Source: Geosiphon pyriformis uo1
Taxonomy: Eukaryota > Fungi > Glomeromycota
Direction: 5' to 3'
Length of the DNA: 64,000 nucleotides
Assembly (NCBI GenBank): GCA_016748015.1
Contig: JAAOMT010000319.1
Span: 1-64,000, forward strand
Position numbers and translations under genes: made by a program. A model generated the notes under the pieces. That model saw only the letters and a program-made list of their open reading frames with translations. It was not told where the DNA came from and did not search any database. This document shows, piece after piece, positions 5,901-64,000 of the stretch (position 1 is its first letter; the number at the start of each line of letters is the position of its first letter).

Positions 5901-7671
5901 CAGGTTCTGGATTGGACTCCTTTGAATCCTCTGCAGTTCCCTGTCAAGTTGCATGTTAATTCTGTGAACAATTTTTTGGCTGGTATGGTTAAGATTTTTT
6001 TGGGTAATAAGCTGTCTTTGGCAAATAACCTGCCTTGCTTTTCATGATCCTGGTAATTTTCTTATGTTATTGGTGTTGGGAAGTGCTTCTTATTTTGGTT
6101 TTGTTCATTCTTTGAAGTAATTTAGTGTTGCCTTTGGAAACAGATTGTTTGACAAGAAGGGTCATGTAATAGATTGGAAAACTTTTCGCCAGTAGAAAAA
6201 GCTCAACCCAAGAGGGTCTGTCCCTTATTAGTTCAATTTCACATCTGGGTTTTTGCATGATGGTGGTGTTTTGCTATCTGGTCTGACTAGAGTCAATCAT
6301 CTTTCTGGTTTGGACATTCTGGCTTCTGGGAAGTTTTTTAATTTGCATAATAGTTTACACAAATTATGGTTTGGTTTTTTTGAGATTTTTACAGATGGTT
6401 CACTAAAAGCTTTTGGCTTTTCTAGTGTTGTTGGTAGTGCTGCTGCATATTTTTCTGCCATCAACTATAGTATTAATATTAGAGTCTGTGGTTTGATGTC
6501 TTTCACCTTGGCCAAGTTGCAGGCTGTTGCTTTGGCATTAGAATGTGTTCTATTTTCTAGTGCGGTGACAGTACACTTTGATAGCCAAGCTGTCATTGAC
6601 ACATGTGTCTCTGAATTGTCTCATCTGGTGCCTGATTTCTGAGTTCCGTGCTGGGTAGAGAGACATTACATTTTTAATTTGATTAGTAAGAAAAATTTGA
6701 GTGTGAGTTGGGTCAAAGTTAAAGGTCATTCTGGTGTTTGTGGCAATATTAAAGCTGATGCTGCTGCTGGTGCTGCTGTATGTTCTCAGTTTTTTTTGCC
6801 TATTGGGATGTGGAAACAGCTTTTAATTGCTGAGAATATGGTCATGTCTGGCAATGCCCACCATTTTGTTAGGGATCTGTTTAGGTCTATATGCCAGGCA
6901 CATTGGGAGACTGGGCCTGGCTGTGATATGATTCAGAGTAGTTTGATCAAATGTGTGGACTAGAATGCTACCTTAAGAGTGTGACACCCTAATTCACACA
7001 TGCTTACTGGGTCTACTAGCCAGAAGTCTTCTGTGCTGTAGTCATATTTGATAAAGGCTGTGCACTATTGACTCTCTATAGCTGTTCAAAAAAAATTGTA
7101 TAATAAGAGTTACTCTAGTGTGCTGTGCTTATTGTGTAGAGAGATGGAGTTGCCCGATTATGTGTTTTCTTGTGCCATAGATGCTAGTGTCTGAGATGAG
7201 ATCTTTGCTGAGACCATTGCATCTTGGATTTCTTTGGTGAGTTCTTGTGTTTTGTCTTCTTCTGCTGTTCTGTAGTTTCTCAGTTGTTGTTTCTCGAATG
7301 TTGGTTTGTATTTTGTTCTGTGTAAGGGATTTGTCATAAGTGATTGGTGCTCAGAGGCTGTTGAAGTTTTTGAAGTCAGGAAGGTGGCTGTTGGTATTGT
7401 TGTCAATTTTGTAAGGAGTGTTGTTGAGCTACACCATAATAAGGTCTGGCTAATAAGATCTAGTTATAGAGTGAGCATGGAAAAAGCTGGTTCAGTTAGG
7501 AATGATGAAGTAGTATTAGGTTTGTCACATTGCAGGACATTTGTGTTGTCTGATGGCATGGTTTGGATGCTTGGTGTTTTGGGTTTTTTTTCTGTTAGCT
7601 TTGATTATCATAGACCTAAACTTTTCTTTTCTGGTTTGGATTTCAGTCCTCAAATCATTATAAGTGTGTAG
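2994..7671 (+). pseudogene. LINE ORF2 (AP endonuclease, reverse transcriptase, RNase H, C-terminal zinc finger), disrupted
   Basis: APE motifs: MCNIRGIN, ITEIKL, LGGNFN, TIDYIF, NTDHNAV. RT motifs: LQDMRKAYNSV, QSEVFSPLL, AFVNNIIW (xxDD decayed to NN), RYLGIFL. RNase H motifs: IFTDGS, FDSQA, WVKVKGHSGVCGNIKAD. C-terminal CLLC...YVFSC. About 18 premature stops and few indels. Confidence 0.92.
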
Positions 7672-9742
7672 TATTGCTTTGTCTGACCTGAATGGCTAGC
7701 CATATGTAGTAAGTACATGAGCTGTATTTAATCTGGGCCTTTTAGTTTGACTCTATATACTAGACAGCAGTTGGATTTTATTCATAAAACATGTAATAAA
7801 AAAAAAAAAAAAATTTATTATTATTGTTATAATTAAAATGATTATTATATATATATTATATATTAAAATTTGTAATTATTAATTATTTTATTATTGTTTT
7901 ACTAATAAAATAGTTAATATAGTCAAATTTTTATAAAAAAACATAATTAAAACATACAAATTATGTTTTATTTTAAAGATATTTTATTATAAAATTTTAT
8001 AATTATTATTAAATAAACTATATTTATTTATTAAATTAATTATTATTATTATTATTATTAAAATATTGATTAATTGTTTTAAAATCTTTATTTTCTCATA
8101 TTTATATAATTTTTTTTTTAAATAAATTTTGGTTTTCTATATTGAAATTTTTTTTTGTTAATTGTTTTTTAAATCTAATTATTTTTTTTAATGCTTTATA
8201 TGCTTTTGTAATTATATTTATAGCAGATAAAAATTCTTTTAATTTTTTTTTTGAATTATTAATTATATTTTTAATTTGAGTATTAACTAAAATTATATCT
8301 ACAATTTTATTATTATTAAGAATATTTTTAATTGCTAATAATTCATTAACTGCTATAATATAATCTTTAAAATTTTCGATTAATTGTTGTGTATTTAATA
8401 ATAAATTATTGAATATATTTATAATAATTAATGTTTTAGATTCTTAAATTTCTAATTTTTGATTATAAAAAAAAATATTTGTTTTTTGCCAATAATTTTG
8501 AATTATAATAGGCGTTACTTAAAATTATGATTAAATAATATAACCAATTACTTGTTTTATGTTTAATTTATTTTTATAAAATAAATTAATATTATATAAA
8601 ATTATATAATATATAATAATACTAATATTTATTAATTAAAAATATAATGTTGTATTTGGAAAAAAATAATGCAAAATAATATTAATTAATTAAAATAAAG
8701 TTTTTTCAATTTAAGTATGATAAAAATTTACATTATTAATCAAAAATAATATGCTGATTTTGAATTTAAAAATTTTTATTTATATATTTAAGTTATGTTT
8801 TCTATATATCTAAATACATCTATGTTTTAAAATTACATTTGTAAATTATAAATAGATTAAAAGTATTAATTTTTTTAAAGCATTTTGAATTTTTTGTATG
8901 TTCAATTATTAAAAATTGTAATTTATAAGATTTAATTAAATTTGTAGCCAAAAAAAATTGTAATTTGAGATTTATTTTATAAAAAACCCAATTAATTTAA
9001 TATAATAATAATTAGTAAATATAATACACTGATTTTTTTTGTATTTTAATATTTTGTAAGTATTTAATTTAGTTTCATATAAAAAAATAATTCTGTTTTA
9101 TTAGTATTATATATGTTAACAGAATTAAATTCAAATATAATATTTTTCTATTTTTTTTATTTTTTGGTAATTTTTAGTTAATATATTTTTTACTTTACTA
9201 TAAAATTAATAAACATATAACTAGTTTTGTTTTTTGAATTTTTAAACTTATTTATTTGATAATTGTATTTTATTTTTATATATACCAAGAAATTTGGCAA
9301 ATTTTTTTTCTTTTTTTAATTAGTTAATTATTAAATTTAATAGTGGCTGTAATTATTTGTTTTCTCAATAACTTAAAATTTGATCTAATAATAAAAAATT
9401 AATGCTTTTATGTTAAATAGATCTTTTTAAGATTTTATTAATTTTAATATTTAACTATTTTGTATGTTTTTTAATTATTTTAGAAATAGTTAGACAAAAA
9501 ATATAAAGTTTTAAATATTTATAATTAAAATAAATTATAATATTATTATGTTTTATATTATAATAATTTTTGCAATATTGATAAATTTTTTTATAAAAAT
9601 GTTATTAATTGTTGTTTATTTTTGTTTTTTAAATAAAAATTTTAATATTATAATAATTTAGCAAATCTGTTAAAAAATATGTCTATAATAATAATATTAA
9701 ATTTAATTTTAACAAGTTTAAATTAAAATACAATAGAGACTA

Positions 9743-62270: not shown

Positions 62271-62790
62271 ATGGAAAAAATACTTGCGAGACGATGGTCA
62301 GCGACACTATCGAGATTCATATAACGAAAATGAGGATATTTTTTCCGGGTTATCACATGACATAATGTTAAAAATCTTATGCTTGTTGAATGAGCGAGAT
62401 ATTTTTTCTGTTGCTCTAGTAATGTCTCATAAAATTTTGTTTTGTATATCTCAAAGGAAAATTGTAAATAATTTATGTATTTAACCAAAAAATTTTGCTA
62501 TTAATCAGGTTAACAAAAACTAGTTTTCGCATACCAAAGATAATTAATAGTGGGACATAATTTTTATGTTACGTTTTGGAGATGAAGAGAATGGAAAGGG
62601 ACAAAGCTTTAAATCTAGTGATGATGAAGAGCAGGAGGAACAGGAAGATGATGAAGATGAAGAGGAGGAGGAACAGGGACAGGAAGATGTACGAAATAGA
62701 CCTGAAAAAGATCCAAAAGAAGATAGATGAGGAAAAAACAGAAATTGATTGGCGTAAATTATACAAAAAATTAGGTAAGAGGTGGTAATT
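62271..62790 (+). pseudogene. F-box protein pseudogene with acidic tract
   Basis: DIFSGLSHDIMLKILCLLNERDIFSVAL | intron | VNKN*FSHTKDN**WDIIF...DDEEQEEQEDDEDEEEEE...IDWRKLYKK, with several stops and frameshifts. Confidence 0.7.
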
Positions 62791-63821
62791 TTTTTGTCTC
62801 CTCAATTTATATAATCAAAGGAATAAAGTTGGAATAATATTAACATGGATCGAATTACTCCTTTTTAGCGGGAAACCTAATATCCTACGTTGCAAAAGAA
62901 AGACAGATTATTTGGATTGAAAGCAGTGCTTATTGGGTAATTGAAAATGATAAAGAGAGGTGATTATCTTCATTTATTTCTCTCCCAAATTTTGATTAAA
63001 AGTTAATAACTTTTAATTTTAATAAAAGTAAATTTGGAAAAATTGCGCGATTCAACCATGTTTGGTGATTTAATTAGAACTCACTTATTAGGGATTTTCT
63101 TAGCAGTAGACTATAAACCTTTGATTATTTTTTATAATTAATAATAGAGAAGGTATTTATTAAAAAAATAATTGATAATGTCCAAGACCAAACCACTTGG
63201 AAAGCTTGCTTGAAAAAAACTTGTTTGCTAGATTTTTCAGGTTAAAAAAAGGTTCTTGTGGTTATTTAATGAGATAGTTTTGCTCTCTTTTCTCTTAACC
63301 GTTTTAGTTCCAAGTAGATTTTTTAAGTTATCCCCCCTCTTTATGACAAAAGATTTTCCAGCCATCCCGATTACTCTCTTTTTCATTAGTTCAGTAAGAA
63401 ACTCTGTTTAGTCTACTTCACCCATTACTGGCTGCGAATAAACCTCTTATGGCATTTATCACATTTTTGCTTTTGATCCATGTCTAGCTGTTAATTCTTA
63501 TTGTCCTATTAATAGCATCGAAGTAGAGTAATTTAAATTGATTTTTCCTAATCGTCAAGACATTAAATTTATCCAAAAAAGAAAGCAGACAAAAAAACTC
63601 TTAATGGTATTCATAGAACGCTCTTGTATGATGCGTCATGAGATGAAAGGATGTATAATAAAAAGTAGCATTATCCTACAAAAAAGATGCCAAAGTTATT
63701 ATGAACAGATAAGTGCTTGAAAAAAAGAAAGTCAAATAAAGGAATGAGAGGTCATTTTTAAAGAGATTATTGAGTATCTTTGGATGAATAGAAAACAAAC
63801 TTATAATTACTTACCTATTAT

Positions 63822-64000
63822 TCACTTCTTTCCTTTTCTTTTGGTGCCATCTGGCAAGACATTATGATAAGCTCCATAACGTCCACTAGGGTATTCGACA
63901 TCCCAGTGGGGGCCACTATGAGAATTAGGATTCCCTGGGTCACGTCCTGTCGGAACCCAAACACTCCCGTCTTTGTGGGGGTATCCTTTTTTGTGACTAT
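63822..64000 (-). CDS. C-terminus of a polymorphic-toxin-like domain (Ntox37-like predicted RNase); gene continues beyond the window
   Basis: Minus-strand frame reads SHKKGYPHKDGSVWVPTGRDPGNPNSHSGPHWDVEYPSGRYGAYHNVLPDGTKRKGKK* (TGA at 63822-63824). From memory this matches the G[YW]PxKxGxVWVPTG...HxGPHWDV..P.G..Y.NV.P.G pattern of bacterial toxin-37 domains. It is absent from the ORF track because the start lies outside the window. Confidence 0.75.
   Translation of the reverse strand, partial: SHKKGYPHKDGSVWVPTGRDPGNPNSHSGPHWDVEYPSGRYGAYHNVLPDGTKRKGKK

Follow-up and report, generated by a model that had tools for sequence, protein, structure and literature searches.

Ntox37 was described as a toxin domain of bacterial polymorphic toxin systems, with an all-beta fold and the signature E, [KR], Hx[DH], and was associated with T2SS and T7SS-WXG toxins (type II and type VII secretion systems), RHS repeats, the PLOTU protease and the immunity protein Imm32; most such novel toxin domains were argued to be nucleases (Zhang et al. 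2012, PMC3482391). At least 13 polymorphic-toxin domains, for example Tox-URI, Het-C and Tox-ARC, were listed in the same survey as transferred to fungi, and Ntox37 was not among them. Between Mollicutes-related endobacteria (MRE) and their fungal hosts, transfer was described in the literature searched from the fungus to the MRE only, with no transfer from an MRE to its host (Sun et al. 2019 and the Geosiphon genome paper lay outside that scope); the bacterial donors of Rhizophagus genes were stated not to be MRE, and a 2026 review mentions no MRE-to-host transfer. The stretch analysed here comprises the first 64,000 nt of contig JAAOMT010000319.1 of Geosiphon pyriformis (contig C489 in the following; C489:1-64000, hereafter the window), and the element in question is an Ntox37 open reading frame (ORF) on the minus strand that crosses the 3' edge of the window, together with the decayed remnant of a neighbouring bacterial gene. 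Taken as a whole, the locus is read, with a probability of roughly 0.8, as a nuclear integrant of a fragment of an MRE toxin-immunity cassette.

Within the window, the minus strand at 63825-63998 translates free of stops as SHKKGYPHKDGSVWVPTGRDPGNPNSHSGPHWDVEYPSGRYGAYHNVLPDGTKRKGKK (58 amino acids), and a TGA at 63822-63824 is the stop codon of the frame. The contig was followed past position 64000, a check proposed in the earlier note; the frame gained just 31 codons, with no added domain, and started at an ATG at C489:64091, 91 nt beyond the window end, with an in-frame TAA 5 codons further upstream. The full ORF thus comprises 89 codons (C489:63822-64091, minus strand), of which the 3' 59 codons and the stop lie in the window (63822-64000). 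ATG codons are present at positions 1 and 9, in this copy and in a second genomic copy on contig C520, and correspond to products of 89 and 81 residues. The G+C content (GC) of the ORF is 47%, compared with 24–30% in the 500-bp flanks and 28% in the window; at third codon positions (GC3) it is 40%, in a genome of 28% GC. The 58 open, GC-elevated codons ending at a stop, on which the earlier note was built, were therefore borne out by the translation and the GC figures.

The full ORF was matched by the Pfam profile Ntox37 (PF15535) with 52.8 bits (E 6.4e-14) over profile positions 2-78 of 78, and the 58-residue window piece was matched by itself with 36.1 bits (E 9.8e-9), each against a cut-off of 27.8, so that the Ntox37 assignment of the earlier note proved correct for both. 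The same domain was recovered at 52 bits in a six-frame search of the genome. The ORF is an Ntox37 domain and nothing else. The signature residues are kept as E13, R20 and H62-W63-D64, the last of these being the HxD motif that had been pointed out earlier; in an alignment of 80 sequences, the invariant columns G8, P10, G24, G36, W45, W63 and V65 are all kept as well, and so are the nearly invariant columns that were checked, with one difference noted, a conservative change of K20 to R. No NCBIfam family matched the ORF.

For the fold, the ORF (C489:63825-64091) was modelled with AlphaFold2, which gave an all-beta structure of five strands with a mean pLDDT (predicted local distance difference test score) of 83.9. 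Searches of the PDB by sequence, using the single ORF and a profile of 80 sequences, returned nothing below E 0.29, and a search by structure with Foldseek returned nothing below E 0.6; rows for Polo-box domains in the Foldseek output were discarded as meaningless (root-mean-square deviation 13 Å). In a wide structure search with VIA-align the best Z was 3.7. Among its top four matches were the colicin E3 ribosomal RNA nuclease (rRNase) domain (Z 3.6, 71 residues aligned) and the CdiA-CT domain of E. cloacae (Z 3.2, 63 residues), with both Z values below the noise level of the tool; these two domains are cytotoxic 16S rRNases of one fold. The resemblance may hint at the fold and the target of Ntox37, as a weak lead and not as evidence, and nuclease activity of Ntox37 is itself a prediction found in the literature only.

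Relatives were collected in an exhaustive phmmer search of the 89-residue ORF against 1.84 billion representative proteins, in which 376 clusters were found at E <= 0.001. The best match was WP_147411421 of GvMRE, the Mollicutes-related endobacterium of Glomus versiforme/Diversispora epigaea (67% identity, 114.5 bits), which is annotated as a 'polymorphic toxin type 37 domain-containing protein'; it was followed by two proteins predicted from fungal genomes, CAG8452298 of Funneliformis caledonium (64% identity, 107.9 bits) and RIA93358 of Glomus cerebriforme (68% identity, 105.0 bits), the latter already labelled 'Toxin 37-like' in UniProt. The next best match after these three reached 83.6 bits. 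At the DNA level, the window matched the GvMRE toxin gene with 76% identity over 160 nt. The toxins of GvMRE, F. caledonium, G. cerebriforme and several metagenomes are of one architecture, in which a hydrophobic N-terminus (MAF...), a Ser-rich linker and a WWGxGLT...LGY piece precede Ntox37, and on MRE-type contigs they are 187-201 residues long. An insertion around NPNS, just before the HGGPHWD motif, is common to the toxin group of arbuscular mycorrhizal fungi (AMF) and MRE.

A phylogeny against bacterial homologs, also suggested beforehand as a check, was calculated from 49 rows. The sequences of AMF, of MRE and of MRE-like metagenomes form one clade (support 91/82), within which both Geosiphon copies, and hence the window copy, group with GvMRE and F. 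caledonium (support 91/91). The other relatives found in a scan of genome collections belong to bacterial metagenome-assembled genomes (MAGs) of Deltaproteobacteria, Rifleibacteriota, Babeliales, Pseudomonadota and Chloroflexia, at 41-51% identity; no MRE genome surfaced in that scan. The relatives in MAGs of Babeliales (Dependentiae), which are intracellular symbionts of protists, lie at 46-51% identity, and the family may be enriched in bacteria living inside eukaryotic cells. Chlamydiae were already among the Ntox37 hosts described by Zhang et al. (2012, PMC3482391).

Both the donor and the direction in which the DNA moved were read from the neighbouring gene. The GvMRE toxin gene lies on a contig of 571 kb that is bacterial, with genes for arginyl-tRNA synthetase, the ribosomal proteins S3 and L16 and methionine aminopeptidase, and it is followed by a convergent DUF8220 gene of 163 codons, which contains three in-frame TGA codons and is therefore readable in the Mollicutes code (code 4) alone. 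MRE-like metagenome contigs have the same convergent pair, with DUF8220 called at 61 residues, and on one of them a PemK toxin gene is also present; in the Geosiphon genome the Pfam PemK profile matched nothing at E <= 0.001. The assignment to DUF8220 (PF26665) rests on the precomputed annotations of the GvMRE and metagenome contigs. From its adjacency, DUF8220 is a putative cognate immunity gene. In the window, a decayed DUF8220 remnant is present on the plus strand at 63487-63701, in the convergent arrangement with the toxin ORF that the endobacterium shows. It was found by tblastn with the GvMRE product (63487-63576, 63% over 30 residues; 63576-63701, 52% over 42 residues; joint E 8e-13), by codon listing and by blastn (80% identity to GvMRE over 80 nt and 69% over 114 nt). 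Its frame is interrupted by stop codons at 63529-63531 (TAA) and 63666-63668 (TAG), shifts near 63576 and lacks some 26 internal codons. A further TGA, at 63639-63641, aligns with the third TGA (Trp) of the GvMRE gene in the context TAT GAT GCx xxx TGA ... ATG TAT, and a TGA at the same codon is kept in the remnant on C520. A gene with TGA for Trp could not have worked in the fungal nucleus, and the transfer therefore went from the endobacterium to the fungus. It is by this remnant, which was not noticed in the earlier note, that donor and direction are identified. When the genome (128 Mb, 792 contigs) was searched with the DUF8220 piece of G. cerebriforme, only the window remnant was matched and no intact DUF8220 was found.

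Between the two remnants lies a spacer (63702-63821) that consists of the decayed 3' end of DUF8220 and of original intergenic DNA; its GvMRE counterpart would span about 182 nt (49 codons and 35 nt), and in the C520 copy it is deleted. An AG|GTAAGT motif is indeed present in the spacer, on the minus strand at 63816-63809 with the G|G boundary at 63815/63814, as had been reported; its interpretation as the donor of an intron in the 3' untranslated region found no support; the GTAAGT sits in decayed DNA between the toxin and immunity gene remnants.

Remnants of DUF8220 stand convergent and directly 3' of the toxin in all four fungal loci, that is in the window, on C520, in G. cerebriforme and in F. 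caledonium. In G. cerebriforme the DUF8220 sequence is 72% identical to that of GvMRE over 109 residues, and within these residues its sole defect is one in-frame TGA; the remnant in F. caledonium is 81% identical over 42 residues; and an in-frame TGA other than that of the window, placed in otherwise well-conserved sequence, is common to the two species. The G. cerebriforme locus (QKYT01000106.1, locus piece 6001-6971) carries an intact, full-length MRE-type toxin of 190 codons on a very AT-rich fungal contig, with a 5' flank of 7% GC, and looks like a much younger insertion than that of Geosiphon. In F. caledonium (CAJVPQ010000160.1, locus piece 8001-8588) the 90-nt 'intron' of CAG8452298 merely removes an in-frame TAG (TGG TAG for the WW of WWGxG); the locus, which is followed by a DUF8220 remnant, probably represents the same MRE toxin as a pseudogene. 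Several transfers into fungi appear to be favoured over one, because the TGA fossils differ and because fungal and MRE sequences interleave on the tree; the tree by itself does not decide between one and several, as monophyly of the fungal copies was not rejected (approximately unbiased (AU) test, p = 0.21).

Upstream, the ORF abuts a decayed kinase. Fragments of a protein kinase with stops and frameshifts were found at C489:64403-64332, 64247-64173 and 64135-64100, and they keep the intron position of intact nuclear paralogs, which are PK_Tyr_Ser-Thr/Pkinase genes with more than 100 copies in the genome (each of the two kinase exons was searched by itself, not as part of a joined model). One intact paralog is 99% identical to G9A89_023457 of G. 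pyriformis, which bears out the earlier note's guess of Geosiphon. The kinase homology can be followed as far as about 64092, where it breaks off inside the catalytic-loop codons (HRDLHxxNIL), and the ATG of the ORF is formed right at the kinase/toxin junction; no kinase sequence was found 3' of the Ntox37 ORF. An import of the kinase fragment together with the bacterial DNA was considered, as MRE carry fungal kinases, and was rejected, since the intron position of the nuclear paralogs is kept and the homology ends at the junction. Two more kinase genes lie further upstream, at C489:66008-66889 and 70295-71554, and belong to a tandem kinase array; the first is a pseudogene from which an internal deletion has removed the catalytic region, and the second is apparently intact. 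On the toxin side, the Geosiphon fragment is the part that matches residues 110-187 of the G. cerebriforme toxin RIA93358, and relative to the 201-residue GvMRE toxin only residues 112 (approximately) to 201 are present at the window locus; the N-terminal 110 residues of the full-length relatives had no match anywhere in the genome. The delivery or sensor domain that had been expected just beyond the window edge is accordingly missing: the ORF begins 91 nt past the edge against a decayed kinase, and the N-terminal half is absent genome-wide.

The nuclear linkage of the insert was checked against independent data. A public run of the same organism contained 91% of the sampled words of the stretch, and an independent short-read contig (563 nt, 0 mismatches, depth 89, with neighbours at 78-113) spans C489:63629-64191 and so takes in the ORF with 193 nt on its 3' side and 100 nt of the kinase fragment. 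Since the ORF and both AT-rich flanks are present on one independent contig at normal depth, there is no chimeric assembly join; a chimeric join with bacterial DNA had been named beforehand as an observation that would overturn the proposal, and the contig crosses both junctions. A six-frame profile search of the 128 Mb returned two Ntox37 copies only, the one on C489 and one at C520:65024-65230. The two belong to an inverted segmental duplication of about 5 kb (C489:62312-67256 against C520:68564-60720; blastn blocks of 87-95% identity), of which 62312-64000 lies in the window and which carries the whole cassette remnant and several kinase pseudogenes; C520 ends inside the duplicated block. 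The C520 copy is broken by a GGA-to-TAA stop at codon 36, which the analysis treated as X, and has lost roughly its last 20 codons. The kinase junction is common to both copies, and the truncation and the kinase fusion are therefore older than the duplication. In the aligned blocks, the two copies differ at about 19% (12-29%) of the sites where at least one of them has G or C, and at about 2% of the sites with A or T only; under such a strongly AT-biased substitution process, GC-rich foreign DNA seems to evolve faster than its flanks. The bacterial origin of DNA in a fungal nuclear contig, as claimed in the earlier note, was thus borne out by the synteny with GvMRE, by the TGA fossil and by the linkage to fungal flanks.

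The following history would account for these observations. A piece of about 600 bp (C489:63487-64089) would have been copied from the toxin-immunity cassette of an MRE that inhabited the cytoplasm of G. pyriformis or one of its ancestors. Of the small polymorphic-type toxin gene it comprises the final 40%, precisely the Ntox37 domain, and of the convergent DUF8220 gene the greater part. The fragment would have been joined to a pseudogene of a tyrosine kinase-like (TKL-type) kinase at its catalytic-loop codons, the junction creating the ATG, and the whole region, about 5 kb, would later have been duplicated. The immunity gene would have been unreadable to the fungus from the start, because its in-frame TGA means Trp in the Mollicutes code only, and would have decayed further since. 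Some points limit this account of the origin: the tree rests on just 84 columns, the donor allele in the MRE of Geosiphon itself was not seen, the 67% identity to GvMRE would allow another, unsampled related endobacterium as donor, and Ntox37 was paired with Imm32 by Zhang et al. (2012), whereas the neighbour here is DUF8220.

As to its present state, the toxin ORF is probably a relic, inert or on its way out, and not a functioning gene of the fungus, because it lacks a part for export or delivery, its immunity partner is dead and there is no sign of transcription. It is also possible, if rather unlikely, that the ORF is a domesticated mini-gene, in which case Geosiphon would express a stand-alone Ntox37 domain of 81 or 89 residues, which might act as an RNase/DNase-type effector in the control of endobacteria, in non-self or cell-death reactions, or in defence. 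The two were weighed by a comparison of the C489 and C520 copies over 67 shared codons, in which 22 sites differ (11 synonymous and 11 not, counting two stop-making changes), with the neutral expectation taken from the mutation spectrum of 3.3 kb of duplicated flank. Four results of this comparison speak against a pure relic. Half of the substitutions (11/22) are synonymous where 22% were expected (P = 0.003); a pairwise codon model with estimated kappa gave an omega of 0.28 (likelihood-ratio p ~0.01); there are 0 indels in 201 nt, where the flanks show 15 gap openings in each kb (P = 0.05) and the adjoining 150-nt kinase fragment shows ten; and the amino-acid changes fall mostly on the C520 branch. 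Domestication would also agree with terminal branches of 0.026 for C489 and 0.17 for C520, with an open frame that has ATG codons at positions 1 and 9 and keeps all family-invariant residues, with the heavy decay of the neighbouring DUF8220 and kinase remnants over the same period, and with a GC3 that still stands at 40% in a 28% GC genome.

The same comparison contains the main objections to domestication. The divergence at G/C sites is 17.8% in the ORF and about 19% (12-29%) in the flanks, and is thus not reduced; 11 nonsynonymous differences were counted where about 12 would be neutral, and 11 synonymous ones where 3.4 were expected, which is an excess of synonymous changes and not a deficit of replacements. 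With replacements near neutral and synonymous changes in excess, chance in a small sample of just 22 differences, or a rate that varies locally, may lie behind the ratio tests. Moreover, the ORF has no delivery domain, signal or intron, its start codon is an accident of the kinase junction, there is no living immunity gene in the genome, the sister copy on C520 is dead, and the locus is surrounded by pseudogenes. No public run recorded as RNA was found to contain the stretch, and two other runs of the same sample (type unrecorded) show nothing over the ORF. Contigs of these two runs match in two places only, window 62620-62677, inside an acidic low-complexity ORF rich in D and E (62566-62730), and C489:64173-64212, a kinase catalytic-loop motif of 40 nt; other genes are the probable source of both matches. 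The earlier description of the locus as a horizontally acquired, domesticated toxin is consequently retained for the acquisition; the domestication, at which the codon pattern hints, is a possibility set against the dead immunity partner and the broken sister copy. That Geosiphon keeps the bare Ntox37 domain under selection as a cytosolic effector of its own, for example to police endobacteria or to cause cell death, without an immunity protein, is a speculation and is considered doubtful; if it were true, the host would have turned the interbacterial weapon of its symbiont against that symbiont.

Of the explanations that dispute the transfer itself, a reversed direction, in which the gene pair would be fungal and would have been passed to the endobacteria, is very improbable. 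It would follow the precedent of the kinase, leucine-rich-repeat (LRR) and MGMT genes, since the fungus is the donor in every published transfer between Glomeromycotina and MRE, and the tree alone cannot root the clade (AU p = 0.21 for fungal monophyly). It is opposed by the wide spread of Ntox37 in bacteria, where 376 clusters were found at E <= 0.001 and relatives are known from Deltaproteobacteria, Rifleibacteriota, Babeliales, Chloroflexia and others, and by the survey of 2012, in which no eukaryotes were listed for Ntox37 (PMC3482391). The pair is called as genes on MRE-type contigs. Every fungal DUF8220 is broken, with the TGA of the window exactly at a bacterial TGA-Trp codon, and the fungal copies have no introns, the only annotated one, in F. 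caledonium, just skipping a TAG.

Least probable of all is an assembly artefact or contamination, in which the Ntox37 segment would be endobacterial DNA co-assembled or chimerically joined: MRE contigs and chimeric MRE-fungus assemblies have been reported in Glomeromycotina genomes (PMC10507103, PMC11423566) and the 47% GC of the ORF stands out from its flanks, but an independent contig crosses both junctions without a mismatch and at the depth of its neighbours, the insert amounts to only about 600 bp within an 89-kb contig of fungal genes, the truncated toxin is fused to a kinase fragment that still holds an intron, the duplication of the cassette took in 5 kb of fungal flank and its copies now differ by about 10%, and the immunity gene has TAA, TAG and frameshift lesions.

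With the nuclear integration of an MRE cassette fragment as the preferred reading, the loci of Geosiphon, G. cerebriforme and F. caledonium show a flow of genes from MRE to fungus and bring internal proof of its direction in the gene order and in the unreadable TGA for Trp. TGA fossils in conserved frames could serve as a simple marker for further inserts and would separate true nuclear inserts from MRE contamination. Geosiphon, or an ancestor of it, is indicated as the host of an MRE that carried the cassette, and the small module of a toxin plus DUF8220 is likely an interbacterial weapon of these uncultured endobacteria.

Compared with Ntox37 of the bacterial polymorphic toxins, the domain in Geosiphon is alike in its full profile match, its all-beta model and the presence of E, [KR] and Hx[DH], and differs in that it stands alone in a eukaryotic nucleus, severed from its N-terminal part. 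That part consists, in the closest bacterial relatives, of a short hydrophobic head, a Ser-rich linker and WWGxG..LGY, and is not RHS, WXG or PLOTU protease. The locus is also unlike a polymorphic toxin system as such, where the N-terminal part for trafficking or secretion, still present in the bacterial relatives, is lacking from the Geosiphon ORF. Next to the toxin in GvMRE and on the metagenome contigs stands a conserved gene, the putative immunity gene DUF8220 instead of Imm32; its remnants follow the toxin in every fungal locus, and in the fungus it is dead. The closest system is the toxin-DUF8220 pair of GvMRE, with 67% identity in protein and 76-80% in DNA, the same convergent order and the same TGA position in DUF8220; there, in contrast to the window, both genes are complete (toxin 201 residues, DUF8220 163 residues, code 4). 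The toxin domains listed as transferred to fungi are likewise bacterial toxin domains in fungal genomes, but stand within multidomain proteins, whereas here a bare fragment is found with a dead immunity gene attached.

Endosymbiont DNA is known to insert into host nuclei. As in the transfers from Wolbachia to arthropods and in the nuclear copies of mitochondrial and plastid DNA (numts and nupts), a short fragment of a cytoplasmic bacterium lies in the nuclear DNA of its host, mostly non-functional and decaying, and such insertions probably recur independently in related hosts, here in Geosiphon, G. cerebriforme and F. caledonium with different TGA fossils. Unlike in those cases, the donor here is Mollicutes-related, and its different genetic code makes one of the genes unreadable on arrival.

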